This document shows, piece by piece, positions 7,721-64,000 of a stretch of DNA of 64,000 bases (position 1 is the stretch's first letter; each line of letters opens with the position of its first letter). A program made the translations under genes and the position numbers. Source of the DNA: Mobula hypostoma (Eukaryota); assembly GCF_963921235.1 (NCBI RefSeq), contig NC_086128.1, positions 20,460,001 through 20,524,000 of the forward strand, written 5' to 3'. The notes beneath the pieces are model-generated. The model worked only from the letters and a program-made list of their open reading frames with translations. It was not told where the DNA came from and ran no database searches.

Positions 7721-8578
7721 CTATGGTATCTCATACATGAACAAGCATTTCCAACAGTACACCAATGAAATTAGCCTGGATTCTGTGTTCATCTCTTAAG
7801 TAGGAATGGAAACCACAACCCAAATGAGCATAGCTGATCAATGCCAATAGAACATGTCTTTGTAATATCAAGTCTACTTGCACCTCACCTTGCACATTCG
7901 GTTTGGCTGCAAGTTTAGTCTTGGCATGTCCTTGCCTACGACGCTGTTCATGAATGCCATAACCATTGACCTTTGGGATTCAGCAGTTGGAAAACTGAAC
8001 ACAAGAAATTTAATTCCTATGAAAATCCTAATCTCCAAAAGCTTGATTTGTTGCATCACTTTTGAACAGTGGCCTTTTTCACGGGGTAATACTGAACAGT
8101 TGCTCGCACTACTTTCTTAAACATTATGGCAGGTTGGTATATCTTGAAACTCAAACCAGTTCTGATGGAGGGTCTGAGGCCTGAAATTTTAATTCTGATT
8201 TCTTCTCCAGATGCTGCCAGAGCTGATGAAGGTTTGCACCATTTTCTGATTTTTCTTCAGAAGCTCTTTGTTACTGAACCAGGAGGCTGATTTTATCCTT
8301 AAAAAATACTTTATTTTATATAGATACAGTGGCATGCAAAAGTTTGGGCACCCCTGGTCAAAATTTCTGTTACTGTGAATAGTTAAGTGAGTAGAAGATG
8401 AACTGATCTCCAAAAGTAATAAAGTTAAAGATGAAACATTCTTTTCAACATTTTAAGCAAGATTGGTGTATTATTTTTGTTTTGTACAATTTTAGAGTGA
8501 AAAAAAAGGAAAGGAGCACCACGCAAAAGTTTGGGCACCCCAAGAGATTTGAGCTCTCAGATAACTTTTACCAAGGTC

Positions 8579-9153
8579 AGTCAGTGGGTGCCGCCCCAAA
8601 TCCAGGGTTGGCGGCTATGCACCTCCATGTTCTTCGATCTTGCGACAGCACCGAGTATAGCCTCTCTTCCAGTTTGTTCTTGCTGGCCGCCTTGGCACTG
8701 CCCGCCGCTGCCCCTGCCGAACTCGAGCCCGAGGCCGTGTCGGCTTTCAGCCGTGGCCGCTTCTTCAAGCTCAGCCCTTCCTTAGGCAGAGGCCTTGGGC
8801 AGGTCCAGGCACACAGTGCAGCACCCAAGTTCATCAATCTCTTCTAACTAGGTGCATAGCATACACTTCGTAGATATGTGGTGAGGCTTTAATCTCTTCC
8901 ACGGAAGATGGCCGTTGGCTCACAAGGAGCTCATCCACCCTTTGTTAGGTCTTGTTTTCTTTCAGTCCTGCTGGGTGTCCTCACACCCTCTTTACCAGAC
9001 TAAGTCTGGTGGGGGAGCCGGCTCAAGTCGCCGACCACTCGACCACGGCCCCCGGCCAAGCGCCGGGCGCCCACCCCCCGCCAAATCTCTCCGAGCGTCT
9101 GGTGCCCGACCAAAAACTATGGTCGAGTGGCCGGCAACCAAACCAGAAGTACT
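8579..9153. mobile_element. Unclassified 575-bp GC-rich insertion (AGT...ACT ends, 6-bp TSD AAGGTC) nested in the Tc1
   Basis: AAGGTC at 8573-8578 and 9154-9159; abrupt GC/CpG shift at both junctions. Confidence 0.75.
8645..8824 (-). pseudogene. CYHR1: Captured, circularly permuted fragment of CYHR1/ZFTRAF1 coding sequence
   Basis: Minus strand encodes [12 protein letters not shown] (8823-8788), then KKRPRL...[10 protein letters not shown] (to ~8646). Native CYHR1 as recalled reads KKR...[26 protein letters not shown]. Confidence 0.85.
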
Positions 9154-9288
9154 AAGGTCTCAGACCTTAACTAGCTTGTTAGGGCTATGATTTATTCACA
9201 GTCATCGTTAGGAAAGGCTAAGTGATGCAAATTTCAAAGCTTTATAAATACCCTGACTTCTCAAACCTTGTCCCAACAATCAGCAGTC

Positions 9289-10301
9289 ATGGGCTCCTCT
9301 AAGCAGCTGCCTAGCACTCTGAAAATTAAAATAAATGCTGCCCACAAAGCAGGAGAAGGCTATAGGAAGATAGCAAAGTATTTTCAGGTAGCCGTTTCCT
9401 CAGTTTGTAATGTAATTAAGAAATGGAAGTTAACAGGAATGGTGGAGGTCAAGTTGAGGTCCGGAAGACCAAGAAAACTTTCTGAGAGAACTGCTTGTAG
9501 GATTGCTAGAAAGGCAAATCAAAACCCCCGTTTGACTGCAAAAGACCTTCAGGAAGATTTAGCAGACTCTGTGGAGTGGTGGTGCACTGCCCTACTGTGT
9601 AGTGACACCTGCACAGATATGACCTTCATGGAAGAGTCATCAGAAGAAAACCTTTCCTGTGACCTCACCACAAAATTCAGCATCAGAAGTTTGCAAAGGA
9701 ACAGCTAAACAAGCCTGATGCATTTTGGAAACAAGTCCTGTGGACTGATTAAGTTAAAATAGAACTTTTTGGCCGCAATGAGTGAAGGTATGTTTGGAGA
9801 AAAAAGGGTGCAGAATTTCATGAAAAGAACCCCTCTCCAACTGGTATGCACAGGGGTGAATCGATCATGCTTTGGGCTTGTGTTGCAGCCAGTGGCACGG
9901 GGAACATCTCACTGGTAGAGGGAAGAATGAATTCAATTAAATACCAGCAAATTCTGGAAGCAAACATCACACTGTCTGTAAAAAAGCTGAAGATGGAAAG
10001 AGGATGGCTTCTACAACAGGATAATGATCCTAAACACCTTAAAATCCACAATGGACTACCTCAAGAGGTGCAAGCTGAAGGTTTTGCCATGGCCTCACAG
10101 TCCCCTGACCTAAACATTATCAAGAATCTGTGGATAGACCTCAAAAGAGCAGTGCATGCAAGATGGCCCAAGAATCACACAGAACTAGAAGCCTTTTGCA
10201 AGGAAGAATGGGTGAAAATCCCCCAAAAAGAATTGAAAGCTGGCTACAGAAAGCGTTTACAAGCTGTGATACTTGCCAAAGGGGGTGTTACTAAGTACTG
10301 A
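9289..10301 (+). pseudogene. Tc1 transposase pseudogene
   Basis: HTH (GEGYRKIAKYFQVAVSSV), GRPRK linker, WTD* stop, QQDNDPKH, SPDLNIIKNLW (catalytic E replaced by K), C-terminal KGGVTKY; several frameshifts. Confidence 0.92.
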
Positions 10302-10512
10302 CCATGGAGGGTGCCCAAACTTTTGCTTGGGCCCTTTTCCTTTTTTGTTATTTTTGTTACTGTGAAAGATGGATATAAAAAAGTTTTCTTGCTTAAAATA
10401 TTAAAGAAATGTGTCATCTTTAACTTTATGCCTTCTGGAAATCAGGTTATCTTTTATTCGCTTAGCTATTCACAGTAACAGAATTTTTGACCGTGGGTGC
10501 CCATACTTTCGC

Positions 10513-10900
10513 CTTCTCTCGCGAAGGGGCGGAGTTTGGCTTTTCTGGTGTGTTTTTCTCGCATCGACCTTCCCGCGCCTGACGGCTGACAGTCACGTGA
10601 CACGGGGCAGGCAAAGCTAATCGAGCAGGAGCCGGTGGCGTGAGTTGGTCTGTCAGCCTGTGTGTGCTGGGCTGCAGAGATGGCAAGTGAGTACGGCTAG
10701 GTTTGGAAAAGAGGGAGAAACGGTGCGCGCTAAAGGTTTCGTGGGGAAAAAGTGTGGGTTTGCCGATCTTAGTGGGCGGAGTTCCGGCAGAGATCGTTGC
10801 AAGGGCGCCGCGAGACGCCGCCGCGTGTGGAGCTGGAGGACTGTCAGTTTCCCTCCGCGGGTCCCGGCAAGTTTGTGGAGCTCGGGGGCGGTGTGTGCTC
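10513..10900 (+). promoter_or_regulatory. HAT1 CpG-rich promoter / exon 1 region
   Basis: High CpG density. CGCG-element-like TCTCGCGA 10517-10524, GC box GGGGCGGAGT 10526-10535, E2F-like TTCCCGCG 10570-10577, palindromic E-box GTCACGTGAC 10592-10601, all just upstream of ATG 10680. Confidence 0.8.
10680..10686 (+). CDS. HAT1: HAT1 coding exon 1 (ATG GCA A)
   Basis: ATG in a CpG-rich region followed by donor GTGAGT; phase 1 matches exon 2. Confidence 0.85.
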
Positions 10901-31500: not shown

Positions 31501-34500
31501 TTAGTTCCTAATTGTTATCGCCAGAGGAATTGATCCAGTGTACATTGTTATTTTGATTGACAGTAAATTCACAAAATCAGTGCAGACACATCATACAGAT
31601 AATGGACAGCCTTCATACAATGCTTTCCACCGTTGCATCCTCCAAATCTTCATTTTCATTGTAATATTCAAGATGAAACCTTCAAATTCTCCGTATTTCC
31701 CAACTTGTTGATGTAGTGAAATCATTTTATTTTCATTTCTGGCATCTCCAAGCCTGAATGCTTGAAACCAAAGTGAGCAAAGCAGTTCTGAATTATCTTA
31801 ATGTTTATTTCTCACCAACTATCAGTGACTAAACTCACTGCTTTTTGAACACAAACACACACAACTGACACTATTTGAAAACTATTCCATCTATTCTTTG
31901 GAGCGTAGAAGGTTGAGGGTGGACTTGATAGAGGTATTTAAAATTATGAGGGGGATTGATAGAGTTGACGTGGATAGGGTTTTTCCATTGAGAGTGGGGG
32001 AGATTCAAACAAGAGGACATGAGCTGAGAGTTAAGGGCAAAAGTTTAGGGGTAACATGAGGGAGAACTTCTTTACTCAGAGAGGTGGCTATGTGGAACGA
32101 GCTTCCAGCAGAAGTGGTTGAGGCAGGTTCGATGTTGTTTAAAGTTAAACTGGACAGCTATATGGACAGGAAAGGAATGGAGGGTCGTGGTCTGAGTGCA
32201 GGTGGGACTGGGTGAGAGTAAGAGCTTGGCACGGACTAGAAGGGCCGAGATGGCCTGTTTCCGTACTGTAATTGTTATATGGTTATAAGCATGGTTTAGT
32301 GTCTAATGGCCACACAAGTGCATGCAACTGACGCTAGTTAGAAACTGTTTGACATAGTGTCCCAAATGAACTAAGGGAATCTGGCTGTTTTGTCAATTAG
32401 TTTTTATTCTTTAAAGAGTTTTCCCAAATAAGACCATAAGACATAGGAGCGGGATTAGGCCATTTGGCCCATCGAGTCTGCTCTGCCATTCAATCATGAC
32501 TGATCCTTTTTTCCCCTCCTCAGCCCCACTCCCCAGCCGTCTCCCCATAACCTTTGATGCCATGTCCAATCAAGAACCTATGAAGTTCTGCCTTAAATAC
32601 ACCCAACGACCTGGCCTCCACAGCTGCCTGGGGTAACAAATTCCACAAATTCACCACTCTCTGGCTAAAGAAATTTCTCCACTTCTGTTTTAAATGGATA
32701 CCCCTCTATCCTGAGGCTATGCCCTGTTGTCCTAGACTCCCCCATCATGGAAACATCCGTTCCACATCTACTCTGTTTAGGCCTTTCAACATTTGAAAGG
32801 TTTCAATGAGATTTCCCCCTCATCCTTCTGAATTCCATTGAGTACAGACCCAGGGCTATCAAACTTTCCTTGTATGATAACCCTTTCATTCCTGGAATCA
32901 TCCTTGTGAACCTCCTCTGAACCCTCTCCAATGCTAGCACATCTTTTCTCAGACGAGGAGCCCAAAACTGTTCACAATACTCAAGGGGAGGCCTCACCAG
33001 TGCCTTATTAAGCCTCAGCATCACATCCTTGCTCTTGTATTCTAGACCTCTTGAAATGAATGCTAACATAGTATTTGCCTTCCTCATCACTGACTCAACC
33101 TGCAAGTTAACCTTCAGGTTGTTCTGCACAAGGACTCCCAAGTCCCTTTGCATCTCAGATTCTTGGAATTTCTCCCCATTTAGAAAATAGTCTGCACATT
33201 TATTTCTGCTACCAAAGTGCATGACCATGTATTTTCCAACATTGTATTTCATTTGCCACTTTCTTCCCATTCTCCTAATCTGTCCAAGCCGTTCTGCATC
33301 CTACCCAATTCCTCAACACTACCTGCCCTTCCACCAATCTTCGTATCATCTTCAAACTTGGCATCAAAACCACTTATTCCATTTAATCAGGACAGCCACT
33401 TAACCAATAACCCAATTAAATTGAATCCTCTGTATTTAAGATGGGGACAGGTACTTTGCCCTGGATGTTGAACTTTGGAATTGCAGTCATCTAGGCATTC
33501 ATTTATGCTTCTGGAACTGTGTTTTGTAGTTGATAGAAAGACTTCGGGGAATTGAGAAATTAGATACTTCCACAGAATATCCAGACTGTGACTTGCAGTC
33601 ATAGCATTTATGTGGCTGGGATGGTTAAATTTCTGATCACTGGTGAACCCAGGATATTGATTTGGTGATAATGTTACTAGAAGATGGATTATCTTCTCGT
33701 GTCATATTAGTAGAGACTTCTTCATTTTCAAGGAATTCCAAATAGAGTTGAATGGTGTAATCTCAATTTACCAAAGTAGCAGAAAGTTCAATGTTTTTCT
33801 TTTTAACTGACAAAGAAATAATCATGACAAGGGGTTTGATAATGGATTGCTTGGATCAGCACAGACATGGGCCAAAGGGGTTGTTCCTATGTCTATAAAT
33901 GTTTTTCCATCCCTTCATGTTTTATGTTTGCAGTAATTTCTGTCCCAAATCATATGCCATGTTTAAAGGGTGTTTAATTTGGAATTTCAGCTGAAGAACC
34001 ATCTGACGACTTTGTGAAATTACGAGATTATGTTCTTGCTAAACTTTGCCAGGATCTCCCTGCCTTTTCACCTGAAAAACTCAGGAAAGGATTCAGTGCA
34101 GAAATGGTAGAAGAGGCCAGAAGAACCTGGAAAATAAATAAGGTATTTGTGATTTACTCACTATGATAGTGGATTTCAAATTTCATCAGGTTTTCCAAAT
34201 CATACACAGTCAGTATCTTGTACCCTATGGTGTACACTTTGGGGCCTTGCCAACTTGCCTCCTTTTGTTGGCAGTGGCTCCTATATCAAGTTTGCCAGTT
34301 TTGGCACAGTTTAGAATGCATGTGCACCCACAACAAAATTACTATACAATTCAAAAGTATGTGAAATAAAAGTTCACATGAGAGTAAAAGGGAATATTTG
34401 CAGATAGAACTTTATTTCCTATTTGACAGCAAGATGTGAAGGGATTCCAGATTGATTCCTGAGGAATCAATAAACAATTTATTTTTTATATCTTCGTGTG

Positions 34501-37500: not shown

Positions 37501-40500
37501 CAGAGGAAAGCCATTGTGGTCAGGTGCTTTGGGGGAGAAGTCACAGAGTGGTAGGAGATGGTTGCCTCTCTGACTGATGGCCTATGACTGGTGATGTGTG
37601 GAGGGATTAATGTTGGGTCTGTTGTTGCTTGTCATCTATATCAATGGTCTGGATGATAATATGCTAAGCAAATCATTAGCAAATTTGCAGATTACACCAA
37701 GATTGGGATTGTAGTAGGCAGTGAGGAAGGCTATCATTGCTTGCATGGGGATCTGGACAGCTGGAAAAATGGGCTGATAAATGGAAGATGGAATTTAATG
37801 CAGATAAGTGTGAGCTGTTGCACTTTGGGAGAACAAACCAGTGTAGGACTTGCACAGTGAATGATAGGGCACTGAGTACTATGGTAGAACAGAAGAATCT
37901 GGGAATATAGATCTATAATTCCTTGAAAATGGCGTCACAGGTAGATGGGGTCTTTTTTTTTAAAAAAAAGCAAGCTTTGGCAGATTGACCTTCGTAAATC
38001 AAAGTACTGAGCTGAGAAGTTAGGACATTATGTTGAAGTTGCATAAGACATTGGATTATTATATGCAGTTTTGGTCACTAACGTACAGGAAAGATGTCAA
38101 TAAGATTGGAAAAAGTACAGAGAAAATTTACAAGGATGTTGCCAGGACTTGATAATCTGAGTCATAGGGAAAGATTGACTAGGTTAGGAATTTATTCCCT
38201 AGATTGTAGGAGAATGAGTGGAGATTTGATGGAGATGTACAAAATTATGAGGGGTAAGTGCAAGCAGGCTTTTTCCACTGAGATTGGGTGAGACTAGAAC
38301 TAGAGGTCATAGGCTAAAGGTGAAAGGTGAAATGTTTAAGGGGAACATGAGGGGGAACTTCTTCACTCAGAGCTTGGTGAGGGTGTGAAACGAGCTGCCA
38401 GAGTGAATGCGAGTCTGATTTCAACATTTAAGAAAAGTTTGGATTAGTAAACGGGTGGGAGAGTTATGGTCCAGGTGCAGGCTGGTGAGACTAGGCAGAA
38501 TAATAGTTGGCATGGACTATTTCAGTGTTTTAGTTTTCTAAGATTCTAACTTGACCTCATGCTGAATGCAATTGACTTTATTCAAGTTTAAGACACTATT
38601 GCAGAGCCATTGTAAACTCATTATAAGCAACTACAGACCACTTCTTTGAGATGGACAGAGACCTAGCAGGAACCCAATGAATTTCTACTTTCTTTTTACA
38701 CCAAATTTTTGTTCACATTCCTCCTTCTCTCTCCTTGCAGTTGCACTGTCTTTTATACTGTGTGCCAGATTTTTCATCTCATTTTTCATAGAATAATCTT
38801 CATTGTTACCACAGAGGGGCTTTTAAAAATATAAATTCCCAAGGAAATAACATTGTCCAAGGCTTGTCCACCTCAACAGTTTTATATCCTGCAAACTGCC
38901 CCCGGTTCCTTTTTTATTTATTCTTTTAACGATGGCTATGTTAATAAAACAATAACCTGGAGTCTGAAGAAAATTTAAGCCTGCAGTCTTTTAATATTTT
39001 TACAACTTTTCAGCATCACGCAAGAAGAGTATATGAGATTCTACGGCTGCGAGTGACCAACATGAGTGACCCAGTGCAAAGCAGCGAGTACCGGTTGGAT
39101 GTGAAACGCAGGCTTGCCATTCCCTTTAAGGTATTTAGGACAATATTTTTCTTGCCGAGATTAATGTTGAGAGAGAGCAGAGTTGAAACAGTTGGGGTGG
39201 TATGTTGGTTGTGTGGTGATGGTGCAAGGCAGATCTGAGCACCCACATATACTTAAATAATACAGGATAACAGTAAAAGATTGACTTGCTTGCTTCCTAT
39301 GATGCTGTGGCATTGATACCCACAGCCCATTTTAATTTCCTCATTCACTTTGAGAACCCGAAGTTCCCCTCCATGTCAAAGTTAAAAATATGTTCCTTCA
39401 TCATCACTGGGTCTAAATCCTGGAGTTTCCTCCCCAATCACACTGTGGGAGTACCTTTGCCAGAAGGACTGCAGTAGTTCCAGAAGACAGCTCACTGCCT
39501 TCTCAAGGGGCAATAAATTCTGGTTTTTATCTGTGATCCCCCCCAAAAAAATGACTGTTAGGAGTGAGGAAGATCAGCCTGAAGTTATGGAACAACTCAG
39601 TTTTTTTTCTTGCTCCCCACATCAGTGGTCTTACTTTGCAAGAAAATTGGAGTTCAGATTTGATGTTTTCTTGTTTTCTTCCAATTTTCTAATACATCGT
39701 TCAAAATTGATTGCAATTAAGTTGTTTTGTGCTCTAGGCTGGGTCAGGTGGCATTATTCTTTCCACAGATGACTTTAGGGTTTAAGATACAATTATCACC
39801 CTTATGGCAATGATTTTGCTAAACAATGGAGGATCTGAACTCCGAATGTCTGTGTCATTAGTCCAGTACTATAACCAGTTAATTACAGTACCTATTCATT
39901 GTTCATCTCATGGGTCAAGAAATTGATTGGTTAGTTCCTTTCATAGTACAGCACAGGAACAGGCCTTTCATCCCACAGTGTCTGTGCTAACCATGCAAAT
40001 TTTAACTATTCCCATTTACCTGCACATGGCGTATATCCATCTATTCCCTGCCTGTTCATGTGACTGTTCAAATACTTGTTGACCTCCACTATTATATCTG
40101 CTTTCACTACTTCCACTGGCAGTCCATTCCAGGGACACACCATGGTTTAAATAAAAACTGGCCTTCTAAATCTCCTTTAAACTCTGCCCCTCTTTAAAGC
40201 TGCGTCCTTTAGTATTTGACAGTTCCACCCTGGGAAAAAAGACTCTTATCTACCCTACCTATACCTCTCATAACATTGTAAACTTCTATCAGGTCATCCA
40301 TCAGCCTCTAACGCATTAGAGAAAGTAGCCCAAATTTGTCCAACCTCTCCTTATAGCACATGCCCTCTAATCCAGGCAGTATCCTGGTAAACCTCTTTAG
40401 CATCTTCTCCAAAGCCTCCACATCCTTCCTGTAATATGACCAGTAATGCACGCAGTACTGTTAAATATGGCCTCGCCAGAGTTTTATAAAGTAACGATTT

Positions 40501-47000: not shown

Positions 47001-48345
47001 GTTGATGTGCTCTTGGATTTTCAGAAGACCATTGACAAAGTGCCACACATGAGGCTGCCTAACAAGCTATGAGCTTATGGCATTACAGGAAAGATTCTAG
47101 CATGGATAAAGTAGTGGCTGATAGGCAGGAGGCAAAGAGTGGGAAGAAAGGGAGCCTTTTCTGGTTGGCTATCAGTGACTAGTGGTGTTCCACAGGGGTC
47201 TGTGTTGGGACTAATTCTTTTTACGCTATATACCAATGATTTGGATGATGGAATTGATGGCTTTGTTGCAAAATTTGCAGATGATACGAAGATAGGTGGA
47301 GGGGCAGGTAGTTTTGAGGAAGTAGAGAGGCTATGGAAGCACTTGGGTAGATTAGAAGAATGGGCAAAGAAATGGCAGTTGGAATATAGTATCGGGAAGT
47401 GTATGGTCATGCACTTTGGAAGAAGAAATGAAAGGGTTGACTATTTTCTAAATGGAGGGAAAATACAAAAATCTGAGGTGCAAAGGGACTTGGGAGTCCT
47501 TATGCAGGATTCCCTGAAAGTTAATTTGCAGGTTCAATCTGTGGTGCAGAAGACACACGTGATGTTAGCATTCATTTCTAGAGGACTACAATATAAAAGC
47601 AAGGATGTAATGTTGAGACTTTATAAAGCATTGGTGAGGCCTCAGTTGGAGTATTGTGAGCAGTTTCGAGCACTTTATCTTGGAAAGGATGTGCTGAAAT
47701 TGGAGAGGGTTCAAAGGAGGTTCACAAAAATGATTCCAGGATTGAATGGCTTATCATATGAAAAGTGTTTAATGACTCTGGGCCTTTATTCACTAGAATG
47801 CAGAAGAATGAAGGGTGAACTCATTGAAACCTATCAAATGGTGAAAGGCCTTGATAGAATGGATGTGGAGAGGATTTTTCCTATGGTGGAAAAGTCTTAA
47901 GACCAGAGGACACAACCTTAGAATAGAGGGGCGTTCTTTTAGAACAGAGAAGAGGAGGAACTTCTTTAGCCAGAGAGTGGTGAACCTGTGGAATTCTTTG
48001 CCACAGGGAGCTGTTTTTATGTATATTTAAGGCAGAGGTTGATAGATTCTTGGTAACACACACAAAATGCTGGAGGAACTCAGCAGGCCAGGGAGCATCT
48101 ATGGAAAAGAGTTTAGTCAACGTTTTGGGCTGAGACCCTTCAGCAGGACTGTCTGCTGCCTGCCTGAGATCCTCCAGCATTTTGTGTGTCACTTGGATTT
48201 CTCTTGGTTGTTGATAGATTCTTGATTTGTCAGGGCATGAGAGGGGAGGGGGTGGAGGGATGGCAGGAGATTGGGGCTGAGAGGGAAATTGGATCAGCCA
48301 TGATGAAATGGTGGAGCAGACCCTGAGCCAAGTTACCTAATTTTG
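44090..48345 (+). mobile_element. Near full-length degenerate CR1 LINE (ORF1 zinc finger + SGNH esterase; ORF2 APE + RT)
   Basis: CTLCGMWE...CTRC; VLIGDSFVR...GLPGARI...HISNND...DGLQLN; GVVYRSPNS; GNYRPVSLTS; GVPQGSVLG...KFADDTK. Many stops and frameshifts. Confidence 0.92.
48053..48209. repeat. Fold-back insertion of the same family inside the CR1 3' end
   Basis: ACACACAAAATGCTGGAGGA...TCCTCCAGCATTTTGTGTGT arms; 15-bp TSD GTTGATAGATTCTTG (48038-48052, 48210-48224). Confidence 0.8.
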
Positions 48346-60556: not shown

Positions 60557-63500
60557 CACAGAAACATAGAAAATAGGTGCAGGAGTAGGCCATTTGGCCC
60601 TTCGAGCCTGCACCGCCATTTATTATGATCATGGCTGATCATCCAACTCAGAACCCCGCCCCAGCCTTCCCTCCATACCCCCTGATCCCCGTAGTCACAA
60701 GGGCCATATCTAACTCCCTCTTAAGTATAGCCAGTGAACTGGCCTCAACTGTTTCCTGTGGCAGAGAATTCCACAGATTCACCACTCTCTGTGTGAAGAA
60801 GTTTTTCCTAATCTCGGTCCCAAAAGGCTTCCCCTTTATCCTCAAACTGTGACCCCTTGTTCTGGACTTCCCCAACATCGGGAACAATCTTCCTGCATCT
60901 AGCCTGTCCAATCCCTTTAGGATTTTATACGTTTCAATCAGATCCCCCCTCAATCTTCTAAATTCCAACAAGTACAAGCCCAGGTCATCCAGTCTTTCTT
61001 CATATGAAAGTCCTGCCATCCCAGGAATCAATCTGGTGAACCTTCTTTGTACTCCGTCTATGGCAAGGATGTCTTTCCTCAGATTAGGGGACCAAAACTG
61101 CACACAATACTCCAGGTGTGGTCTCACCAAGGCCTTGTACAACTGCAGTAGTACCTCCCTGCTCCTGTACTCGAATCCTCTCGCTATAAATGCCAGCGTA
61201 CCATTCGCCTTTTTCACCGCCTGCTGTACCTGCATGCCCACTTTCAATGACTGGTGTATAATGACACCCAGGTCTCGTTGCACCTCCCCTTTTCCTAATC
61301 GGCCACCATTCAGATAATAATCTGTTTTCCTATTTTTGCCACCAAAGTGGATAACTTCACATTTATTCACATTAAATTGCATCTGCCATGAGTTTGCCCA
61401 CTCACCCAACCTATCCAAGTCACCCTGCATCCTCTCAGCATCCTCCTCACTGCTAACACTGCCACCCAGCTTCGTGTCATCCGCAAACTTGGAGATGCTG
61501 CATTTAATTCCCTCATCCAAGTCATTAATATATATTGTAAACAACTGGGGTCCCAGCACTGAGCCTTGCAGTACCCCGCTAGTCACCGCCTGCCATTCTG
61601 AAAAGGTCCCGTTTATTCCCACTCTTTGCTTCCTGTCTGCTAACCAATTCTCCATCCACATCAATACCTTACCCCCAATACCGTGTGCTTTAAGTTTGCA
61701 CACTAATCTCCTGTGTGGGACCTTGTCAAAAGTCTTTTGAAAATCCAAATATACCACATCCACTGGTTCTCCCCTATCCACTCTACTAGTTACATCCTCA
61801 AAAAATTCTATGAGATTCGTCAGACATGATTTTCCTTTCACAAATCCATGCTGACTTTGTCCGATGATTTCACCGCTTTTCAAGTGTGCTGTTATCATAT
61901 CTTTGATAACTGACTCCAGGAGTTTCCCCACCACCGACGTTAGGCTAACCGGTCTATAATTCCCCGGTTTCTCTCTCCCTCCTTTTTTAAAAAGTGGGGT
62001 TACATTAGCCACCCTCCAATCTTCAGGAACTAGTCCAGAATCTAAAGAGTTTTGAAAAATTATCACTAATGCATCCACTATTTCTTGGGCTACTTCCTTA
62101 AGCACTCTAGGATGCAGACCATCTGGCCCTGGGGATTTATCTGCCTTCAATCCCTTCAATTTACCTAACACCACTTCCCTACTAACATGTATTTCGCTCA
62201 GTTCCTCCATCTCACTGGACCCTCTGTCCCCTACTGTTTCTGGAAGATTATTTATGTCCTCCTTAGTGAAGACAGAACCAAAGTAATTATTCAATTGGTC
62301 TGCCATGTCCTTGCTCCCCATAATCAATTCACCTGTTTCTGTCTGTAGGGGACCTACATTTGTCTTTACCAGTCTTTTCCTTTTTACATATCTATAAAAG
62401 CTTTTACAGTCCGTTTTTATGTTCCCTGCCAATTTTCTCTCATAATCTTTTTTCCCCTTCCTAATTAAGCCCTTTGTCCGCCTCTGCTGAACTCTGAATT
62501 TCTCCCAGTCCTCAGGTGAGCCACTTTCTCTGGCTAATTTGTATGCTTCTTCTTTGGAATTGATACTATCCCTAATTTCCCTTGTCAGCCACGGGTGCAC
62601 TACCTTCCTTGATTTATTCTTTTGCCAAACTGGGATGAACAATTGTTGTAGTTCATCCATGCAACCTTTAAATGCTTGCCATTGCATATCCACCGTCAAT
62701 CCTTTAAGTGTCATTTGCCAGTCTATCTTAGCTAATTCACGTCTCATACCTTCAAAGTTACCCCTCTTTAAGTTCAGAACCTTTGTTTCTGAATTAACTA
62801 TGTCACTCTCCATCTTAATGAAGAATTCCACCATATTATGGTCACTCTTACCCAAGGGGCCTCTCATGACAAGATCGCTAATTAACCCTTCCTCATTGCT
62901 CAAAACCCAGTCCAGAATAGCCTGCTCTCTAGTTGGTTCCTCGACATGTTGGTTCAAAAAACCATCCCGCATACATTCCAAGAAATCCTCTTCCTCAGCA
63001 CCTTTACCAATTTGGTTCACCCAATCTACATGTAGATTGAAGTCACCCATTATAACTGCTGTTCCTTTATTGCACACATTTCTAATTTCCTGTTTAATAC
63101 CATCTCGACCTCACTACTACTGTTAGGTGGCCTGCACACAACTCCCACCAGCGTCTTCTGCCCCTTAGTGTTACGCAGCTCTACCCATATCGATTCCACA
63201 TCTTCCCGGCTTATGTCCTTCCTTTCTATTGCGTTAATCTCTTCTTTAACCAGCAACGCCACCCCACCTCCCCTTCCTTCATGTCTATCCCTCCTGAATA
63301 TTGAATATCCCTGAACGTTGAGCTCCCATCCTTGGTCACCCTGGAGCCATGTCTCTGTGATCCCAACTATATCATAATCATTAATAACAATCTGCACTTT
63401 CAATTCATCCACCTTATTACGAATGCTCCTTGCATTGACACACAAAGCCTTCAGGCGCTCTTTTACAACTCTCTTAGCCCTTATACAATTATGTTGAAAA

Positions 63501-64000
63501 GTGGCCCTTTTTAATGCTTGCCCTGGATTTGTCGGCCTGCCACTTTTACTTTTCTCCTTAGTACTTTTTGCTTCTACCCTCACTTTACACCCCTCTGTCT
63601 CTCTGCACTGGTTCCTATCCCCCTGTTGTGAACTAACCTCCTCACGCCTAGCCTCTTTAATTTGATTCCCACCCCCCAACCATTCTAGTTTAAAGTCACC
63701 TCAGTAGCCCTTGCTAATCTCCCTGCCAGGATATTGGTACCCCTAGGATTCAAGTGTAACCCGTCCTTTTTGTACAGGTCACGCCTGCGCTAAAAGAGGT
63801 CCCAATGATCCAAAAACTTGAATCCCTGCCCCCTGCTCCAATCCCTCAGCCACGCATTTATCCTCCACCTCATCGCATTCCTACTCTCACTGTCGCGTGG
63901 CACAGGCAGTAATCCCGAGATTGCTACCTTTGCAGTCCTTTTTCTCAACTCCCTTCCTAGCTCCCTATATTCTCCTTTCAGGACCTCATCCCTTTTCCTA
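60557..64000 (-). mobile_element. Young CR1 LINE, continues beyond the window end
   Basis: ORF2 split by one frameshift near 63105 (63050-63679 APE N-terminus plus 60648-63077, 809 aa). ORF1 esterase C-terminus at ~63690-64000; TTTCTATG-type tail. Confidence 0.95.
60648..63077 (-). CDS. CR1 ORF2 (APE C-terminal part plus reverse transcriptase), 809-aa open segment
   Basis: MGDFN, LDWVL, SDHN, KSPGPDG, NYRPVSLTS, QHGF, YLDFQKTFDKV, QGSVLGP, FADD. Confidence 0.9.
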   Translation of the reverse strand: MCNKGTAVIMGDFNLHVDWVNQIGKGAEEEDFLECMRDGFLNQHVEEPTREQAILDWVLSNEEGLISDLVMRGPLGKSDHNMVEFFIKMESDIVNSETKVLNLKRGNFEGMRRELAKIDWQMTLKGLTVDMQWQAFKGCMDELQQLFIPVWQKNKSRKVVHPWLTREIRDSINSKEEAYKLARESGSPEDWEKFRVQQRRTKGLIRKGKKDYERKLAGNIKTDCKSFYRYVKRKRLVKTNVGPLQTETGELIMGSKDMADQLNNYFGSVFTKEDINNLPETVGDRGSSEMEELSEIHVSREVVLGKLKGLKADKSPGPDGLHPRVLKEVAQEIVDALVIIFQNSLDSGLVPEDWRVANVTPLFKKGGREKPGNYRPVSLTSVVGKLLESVIKDMITAHLKSGEIIGQSQHGFVKGKSCLTNLIEFFEDVTSRVDRGEPVDVVYLDFQKTFDKVPHRRLVCKLKAHGIGGKVLMWMENWLADRKQRVGINGTFSEWQAVTSGVLQGSVLGPQLFTIYINDLDEGIKCSISKFADDTKLGGSVSSEEDAERMQGDLDRLGEWANSWQMQFNVNKCEVIHFGGKNRKTDYYLNGGRLGKGEVQRDLGVIIHQSLKVGMQVQQAVKKANGTLAFIARGFEYRSREVLLQLYKALVRPHLEYCVQFWSPNLRKDILAIDGVQRRFTRLIPGMAGLSYEERLDDLGLYLLEFRRLRGDLIETYKILKGLDRLDAGRLFPMLGKSRTRGHSLRIKGKPFGTEIRKNFFTQRVVNLWNSLPQETVEASSLAILKRELDMALVTTGIRGYGGKAGAGF

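Follow-up and report, generated by a model that had tools for sequence, protein, structure and literature searches.

The KIT colour-sidedness translocation of cattle is reportedly one of the cases in which a chromosomal segment was relocated through a circular intermediate. The subject of this work is a 180-bp fragment of the first coding exon of CYHR1/ZFTRAF1 whose two parts stand in swapped order, and which lies inside a decayed Tc1/Sleeping-Beauty-like DNA transposon of Mobula hypostoma. It occupies positions 8645-8824 of a 64,000-nt stretch of contig NC_086128.1 (positions 20,460,001 to 20,524,000 of the forward strand, assembly GCF_963921235.1), which is called the window below and in which all coordinates are given. 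An earlier reading of this DNA from its letters alone (the sequence-only reading) had described the fragment as a circularly permuted piece of a host gene carried by a small mobile element. The fragment is a real and well-defined rearrangement scar. Our tentative reading, to which we assign a probability of about 0.4, is that about 160-180 bp of CYHR1/ZFTRAF1 exon 1 were copied, one unit long, via a small circular intermediate.

Reversal of segment order from A-B to B-A, accompanied by microhomology or short indels, is an accepted footprint of circular DNA intermediates (PMC7450558). The large duplications of this origin (Chicote et al. 2020, PMC7450558) share with the present scar a permuted copy, microhomology or short filler at the breakpoints and fixation in the germline, but they span tens to hundreds of kilobases whereas the fragment has ~180 bp, is confined to a single exon and is bordered by what looks like a 16-bp target duplication. 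Germline extrachromosomal circular DNAs (eccDNAs) have a size peak at ~180 bp, are GC-rich and enriched at 5' untranslated regions (UTRs), and arise through microhomology or end joining (Hu et al. 2023, PMC10581685). The fragment resembles these small eccDNAs, or microDNAs, in its size of ~180 bp, its high GC content and its derivation from the 5' end of a gene. Unlike the eccDNAs, which are seen as free molecules, it is known only as a putative re-integrated footprint, and re-integration of germline eccDNA was raised in that study as a possibility only (PMC10581685). Pseudogenes derived from circular RNA (circRNA) likewise consist of non-collinear segments, have no poly(A) and are found in surroundings rich in transposable elements (Dong et al. 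2016, PMC4897178). Their joint is an annotated back-splice of whole exons, while that of the fragment is located inside exon 1, 9 nt before the donor, and exon 1 has no acceptor.

Transposons such as Pack-MULEs and Helitrons are known for gene capture and transduplication. As in such captures, a host gene fragment is found here between the ends of a DNA transposon; unlike in them, it belongs to a separate insert with its own duplication, the site is empty in a related copy of the transposon, the host element is dead and no multi-copy family with the same cargo was recovered. Templated insertions at double-strand breaks, of the polymerase-theta type or of the microhomology-mediated break-induced replication (MMBIR) type, are normally collinear copies. 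The scar has in common with these a mosaic of distant sequences, filler, and short direct and inverted flanking repeats at the junctions; its unit-length circular permutation is not their usual signature.

Content and Order of the CYHR1/ZFTRAF1 Fragment

On the minus strand, positions 8823-8788 encode 12 CYHR1 residues in one frame and positions 8783-8646 encode 46 residues, KKRPRL included, in another; both translations and their direct abutment are as the sequence-only reading had given them. The first stretch belongs to piece B (8788-8824, minus strand), the downstream part of exon 1 where the RING finger starts, which was assigned by its translation and its match to native DNA. The second belongs to piece A (8645-8787, minus strand), the upstream part with KKRPRL, an Ala/Ser/Gly linker and the LEERLYSVL end, assigned by translation and alignment. 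Piece B precedes piece A on the minus strand. The fragment as a whole (8645-8824) comes from the first coding exon and has a GC content of 0.64 and a CpG observed/expected ratio of 0.61.

The identity of the gene was established with a 58-residue query in which the pieces were put back in native order and which was searched against 5.8 billion sequences. It matched two exon-1 open reading frames (ORFs) of other vertebrates (E 4e-5), both running on into the intron. With one of these ORFs as seed, a second search recovered 78 native N-termini from teleosts, birds and mammals, some of them named "Cysteine and histidine-rich protein 1" or "Zinc finger TRAF-type-containing protein 1" in their source. 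The exon-1 motif at the start of the RING finger agrees at 22 of 22 residues with that of relatives named CYHR1/ZFTRAF1, which upholds the gene assignment made earlier. At the DNA level the fragment shares 84-89% identity with exon 1 as found natively in two other vertebrates (L001 and L005), with 86-89% for piece B against both and 84% for the end of piece A (8675-8645) against L001 3217-3247. L005 is a contig of a public metagenome assembly (ENA ERZ28618078) that holds a vertebrate CYHR1 exon 1. Note that this contig and a second metagenome contig used below, which carries a Tc1 copy (L006), hold vertebrate sequence as contamination with host DNA.

Several other searches returned nothing. 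The 46-residue piece A had 0 matches among 1.84 billion representatives, no homologues were found for the 86-residue ORF that spans the fragment, none of ten window ORFs looked up exactly in the sequence collection was present there, and a literature search with the tryptic peptide across the native A-B junction found nothing. No CYHR1 of the same species was among the protein search matches, and both later searches gave teleost, bird and mammal N-termini only. No other CYHR1 exons were found within the 64-kb window, which is therefore not the CYHR1 locus. The fragment is a dead, non-functional copy of the start of CYHR1/ZFTRAF1 and is most likely inert.

In all 78 native N-termini LEERLYSVL runs straight into the motif of piece B. 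The sequence-only reading had considered that the native gene might itself carry a duplication or the B-A order; the reversed order and a duplication of either motif each occur in 0 of the 78. The permutation was measured on exon 1 of other species. Positions 8675 to 8645 align to L001 3217-3247 and positions 8824 to 8789 to L001 3246-3281; compared with either native exon-1 DNA, the outer ends of the fragment coincide at a single native point, overlapping there by 2 nt (GT), as had been claimed. This combination of reversed segment order with both outer ends at one source position, seen here against orthologues, is of the type left by a circle. The native break point is located inside a tandem TGCTG-TGCTG that encodes L-C-C, the 5-nt tandem repeat at the opening point being TGCTGTGCTG.

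The swapped order could also have been inherited, if a collinear B-to-A stretch was copied from a paralogue, pseudogene or allele of CYHR1 in which the exon-1 segment is tandemly duplicated (A-B-A-B). The linker of 28 residues between KKR and LEERL, compared with 10-21 across the 78 relatives, suggests that the gene of this lineage is not represented in the comparison set and thereby speaks for such a source. We nevertheless consider it improbable, given that none of the 78 N-termini is duplicated or reversed, that a duplication across L-C-C, within the RING finger, would be disruptive to a highly conserved protein, and that the exact one-unit excerpt would still be a coincidence. An artefact of assembly or sequencing, in which the junctions would not be real, is very improbable indeed: the window contains no Ns or gaps, the fragment is embedded in unique sequence with orderly, mutated nested duplications, and an assembler would have no reason to build such a structure.

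The Internal Joint

Piece B follows native sequence through 8787 (GCCTCTG) and stops 9 nt short of the exon-1 splice donor, the native context of which is TCTGTxTAYCAG/GTAAAC (the slash marks the exon boundary). This boundary after VYQ is conserved, since 72 of the 78 N-termini read through into the intron after VYQ and the remaining 6 show the spliced continuation VYQCTNGH. Piece A, for its part, begins inside exon 1. The joint is thus not positioned at exon boundaries, where a back-splice would place it, and it lies off the normal donor as the sequence-only reading had stated; cryptic sites are still conceivable.

A possible but unlikely origin is an RNA route, in which a circRNA from cryptic sites, or a short exon-1 RNA with bridged ends, would have been reverse-transcribed once around and inserted by target-primed reverse transcription of the long interspersed nuclear element (LINE) type, which would have produced the 16-bp duplication. 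It is opposed by the location of the joint away from the conserved donor, by the lack of an upstream acceptor in exon 1, and by the fact that the fragment contains no spliced exon-exon junction to prove an RNA origin. In its favour, a GT dinucleotide stands exactly at the native break point, so that a cryptic donor is possible; extra bases added at a template jump would account for filler at the B-A joint; and synthesis halting at its own primer would yield a single exact unit with a slight redundancy at its ends. Furthermore, circRNA-derived pseudogenes without poly(A) have been described, and reverse transcription through open RNAs with adjacent ends was allowed for (Dong et al., PMC4897178). 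The earlier argument that the joint speaks against a circRNA stands insofar as the joint is off the donor, but it is weaker than stated because the GT at the native break permits a cryptic donor.

The sequence next to the joint raises a further point. Of the 78 native proteins 77 read [PT]PKK[RK] (near-universally PPKKR) where the fragment reads SLKKR, on which basis positions 8766-8787 (~22 nt) may be filler at the joint and not CYHR1. Taken together, the long linker and SLKKR may reflect either an unusual CYHR1 in this lineage or a first ~22 nt of piece A that is foreign to the gene. If these positions are filler, the earlier statement that nothing is missing from the rebuilt exon, which is correct for the outer ends, may not extend to the internal joint. 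A k-mer search within the 64-kb window found no source for the putative filler, and copying of the filler from nearby was dropped as an explanation for this reason.

Flanks of the Fragment

The fragment is bordered by an imperfect 16-bp direct repeat, with a left copy at 8625-8640 (CCATGTTCTTCGATCT) and a right copy at 8825-8840 (CCAAGTTCATCAATCT) that agree at 13 of 16 positions; it looks like a target-site duplication. Between the left copy and the fragment are 4 filler bases (8641-8644; TGCG on the plus strand, CGCA on the minus strand) that match neither native CYHR1 nor the 16-bp repeat. A perfect 11-bp inverted repeat, with its left arm at 8614-8624 (GCTATGCACCT) and its right arm, 100% complementary, at 8850-8860 (AGGTGCATAGC), encloses the fragment plus its 16-bp repeat. 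An equally good repeat touching both junctions arose by chance in 5 of 200000 trials, and in 4 of 5000 within flanks of 30 nt. Two ideas on these flanks were tried and dropped, as DNA similarity was no higher than in shuffled sequences: that the sequence upstream of piece B is a diverged copy of piece A, as a tblastn hint had it, and that homology of the target to the opening point steered the integration.

A 13/16 repeat at both ends is what a LINE-mediated retrocopy, with its variable-length target-site duplications, would be expected to leave. Neither end of the fragment carries an A-run, a poly(A) or A-rich tail, or an L1-like TT/AAAA target, and this absence of a LINE tail and endonuclease site counts against the RNA route.

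The repeats and filler bear equally on an origin with no circle at all. A polymerase engaged in repair or replication could have switched templates repeatedly (MMBIR, fork stalling and template switching (FoSTeS), or polymerase-theta end joining), copying from the L-C-C point to near the end of the exon, jumping upstream, copying to the same point and returning to its original template 16 nt behind its exit. Such a path is unlikely, although the locus has several features that would suit it. Unrelated segments (Z, A, B, one that is GC-rich and forms a hairpin, and an AT-richer one) make up the insert as a mosaic; the 16-nt direct and perfect 11-nt inverted repeats adjoin the junctions, as loop-out and snap-back synthesis might leave them; one junction carries 4 filler bases, the internal joint perhaps ~22; and the 5-nt tandem repeat at the opening point is a natural slippage site. 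Independent switches, however, would not be expected to start and stop at the same native position (within 2 nt). Homology between the target and the opening point is not detectable, the 64-kb window contains no local template for the filler or for the other segments, and the three mismatches in the 16-nt repeat would require later mutation or error-prone synthesis.

A Proposed Small Circular Intermediate

The circle is favoured because the fragment is exactly one unit long, its two termini coming from a single native nucleotide (within 2 nt) and the native ends being joined internally. A circle that is opened once yields such a unit length automatically, whereas for two independent template switches, or for a trimmed head-to-tail concatemer, it would be, by a reasoned estimate, a coincidence of a few percent or less. 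A circle of DNA is favoured by the size of ~180 bp, the GC richness, the 5'-exon origin, the joint off the splice site and the absence of poly(A). Three of these properties are those of microDNA, which measures about 180-400 bp, is rich in GC and derives from 5' exons, UTRs or CpG islands. The size of ~180 bp, the GC content of 64% and the 5'-exon origin match germline eccDNA (PMC10581685), which makes the circular intermediate proposed by the sequence-only reading a sensible explanation. Against a standard circRNA stand the joint 9 nt short of the donor, the lack of a natural acceptor in exon 1 and the missing poly(A). The sequence comparison shows the permutation, the meeting of the outer ends, the nesting and both flanking duplications; we infer from these that the intermediate was circular, that it consisted of DNA and that it was integrated by end joining. 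The more specific proposal that the fragment is a germline-fixed re-integration of a mononucleosome-sized DNA circle (microDNA), taken from a housekeeping gene at its first exon, a CpG island, is more doubtful.

The events would have taken the following course. A nucleosome-sized, GC-rich piece of the 5' exon would first have been cut out or copied, then closed to form a DNA circle (microDNA/eccDNA), its closure creating the internal B-A joint near 8787, maybe with a few filler bases. The circle would then have been broken elsewhere, inside the TGCTG-TGCTG repeat encoding L-C-C. Finally, the linear product would have been end-joined into a staggered chromosome break, leaving the 2-nt terminal redundancy, the 4 filler bases and the 16-bp target duplication. 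The target would have been located inside a 571-bp sequence that is itself an insertion, with a 10-bp duplication, in the 5' UTR of a dead Tc1 element just upstream of the HAT1 promoter, whichever of the two insertions came first.

Some observations weigh against a small circular DNA. The ~22-nt filler at the joint, if real, may be long for a simple ligation and would favour polymerase-based joining. The 16-nt direct repeat with the perfect 11-nt inverted repeat at the junctions has the classic look of templated repair, by polymerase theta or by replication, and the 16-bp repeat is unremarkable in a free local alignment (p about 0.1), its weight coming from its position only. The splice-site argument alone separates a DNA circle from an RNA circle, and a GT is present at the native break. 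The native comparison uses orthologues in place of the CYHR1 of this species, which would bear on microhomology at the joint, on the start of piece A and on a tandem duplication. Finally, the observation comes from a single locus of one genome.

The 571-bp Insert and Its Tc1 Host

The 5' UTR of the Tc1 element is interrupted by a foreign insert of 571 bp (8579-9149), and the fragment is nested within it. This insert is missing from a related Tc1 copy, L006, an ENA metagenome contig (ERZ507056, 1124 bp) that is the only related copy recovered, comes from another source and is 86% identical to the Tc1 of the window. Positions 8516-8578 align to L006 42-99 and positions 9150-9766 to L006 90-679, so that both window flanks map onto the decamer at L006 90-99, which is single there. 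In the window this decamer is present as a left copy at 8569-8578 (TACCAAGGTC) and, with one C>T change, as a right copy at 9150-9159 (TACTAAGGTC) that aligns to the L006 decamer. A match of 9 in 10 at fixed positions occurred by chance in 27 of 200000 random trials. As L006 is uninterrupted at the site, 8579-9149 was inserted there and is flanked by a target-site duplication of 10 bp. The one comparison copy has an empty site with a single TACCAAGGTC and does not share the cargo. The claim that the fragment is cargo of a small mobile element is not supported by this comparison, the fragment being nested in a separate insert with its own 10-bp duplication.

A test of the insert for terminal inverted repeats was not significant, poly(A) is absent from it, and no second copy exists within the 64-kb window. 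Rfam gave chance-level matches only, at gathering as well as permissive thresholds, and neither Pfam, searched with all ORFs of the insert, nor PDB sequences gave a match. Besides the CYHR1 fragment there are thus 390 bp with no Rfam, Pfam or PDB identity. An exact-pattern scan of genome and viral contig collections (these do not include the present genome) with two segments of the insert returned 0 matches.

The GC-rich end of the insert (9015-9149) has kept its CpGs, with an observed/expected ratio of 0.90, and can form a long hairpin, as seen from its fold and from a repeat pair. The stem has ~21 bp with nearly perfect arms at 9027-9045 and 9120-9138. The DNA fold has an energy of -36.2 kcal/mol (z-score -4.5), which was attained by 0 of 200 shuffles. 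The hairpin could be a small palindromic element or a product of snap-back repair. Its matches to miRNA families in Rfam are at chance level. A hammerhead or retrozyme source of circular RNA was considered and dropped, there being no ribozyme matches.

The Tc1/Sleeping-Beauty-like transposon extends over 8327-10513 (plus strand). Its inverted repeat/direct repeat (IR/DR) arms, at 8336-8540 and 10512-10309, are inverted relative to each other with 77.7% identity. A flanking TA is present at 8325-8326. Tc1/mariner elements of the Sleeping-Beauty kind have long IR/DR ends that start with CAGTG, and arms, TA, and the HTH and DDE remnants together identify this copy as one of them. The broken transposase coding region (9289-10298, plus strand) consists of an N-terminal HTH remnant (9289-9705; Pfam HTH_SB, E 7e-13) and a C-terminal DDE remnant (9846-10298; weak DDE_3), which are separated by stops and do not share a frame. 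At its end the right terminal repeat has lost ~10 nt. The copy is not intact enough to move. With the Tc1 decayed, its right end truncated and the fragment bearing its own 16-bp flanking repeat, the undescribed gene-capture route proposed by the sequence-only reading finds no basis here; the structure looks like an ordinary nested insertion into a dead element in which the Tc1 had no active part.

The relative ages agree with such a nesting. The CpG observed/expected ratio is 0.19 in the Tc1 body and 0.61 in the CYHR1 fragment, which has 0 amino-acid changes in 22 conserved residues; from the CpG retention and the unchanged residues the insert looks younger than the decay of the Tc1. Divergence since the insertion is estimated, from the unchanged residues, at roughly 6% or less.

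Surroundings of the Locus

A CpG island (10514-10900; GC 0.61, CpG observed/expected 1.03) begins where the right end of the Tc1 stops, and a short ATG...GT exon within it is a putative first exon of HAT1. Downstream, the only PDB matches of a plus-strand exon at ~39008-39127 are weak ones to histone acetyltransferase HAT1 (E 0.42 over 15 residues). The island at the end of the Tc1 and the HAT1-like exon at ~39.0 kb indicate that the Tc1 probably lies just upstream of the HAT1 promoter. The fragment is antisense to both the Tc1 transposase and HAT1, as reported before. It does not follow that read-through would produce antisense or small RNAs against CYHR1, as was also suggested, since both the CpG island and the putative first exon of HAT1 lie downstream of the fragment, which HAT1 transcription need not cross.

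CR1-like LINE copies are found at 60648-63679 (minus strand), 47139-47900 (plus strand) and 32803-33270 (minus strand), one of them with an open endonuclease/reverse-transcriptase frame of 809 amino acids. The C-terminal motif ending in RRLRGDLIETYKILKGLD may be akin to that of CR1 elements of cartilaginous fish. It is plausible, from the 809-residue frame, that a reverse transcriptase was recently active in this genome. For the RNA route, the presence of CR1-like LINEs with long intact ORFs in the window is a supporting point. A second one is that the two nested events left duplications of 10 bp and 16 bp, a variability that is typical of LINE endonuclease and target-primed reverse transcription and not of a DNA transposase.

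Significance

By itself the locus has no evident biological consequence, and it does not demonstrate a new mechanism of capture by transposons. The scar would be a small-scale case of a known process, relocation through a circular intermediate. Reversal of order by a circle is established for very large duplications and for circRNA pseudogenes at the level of exons. If the reading of a small circular DNA is true, a permuted 180-bp scar from a single exon, with a target duplication, extends the circular footprint to the size class of microDNA. It would then follow that the abundant ~180-bp circles of germ cells occasionally re-enter chromosomes and leave recognisable, unit-length permuted scars. 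The main interest of the locus is that it provides a rule for genome-wide searches, in which candidates are gene fragments that are permuted, have unit length and whose outer ends both fall at one source position. Applied across genomes, this rule could serve to gauge how frequently small circles are re-integrated.

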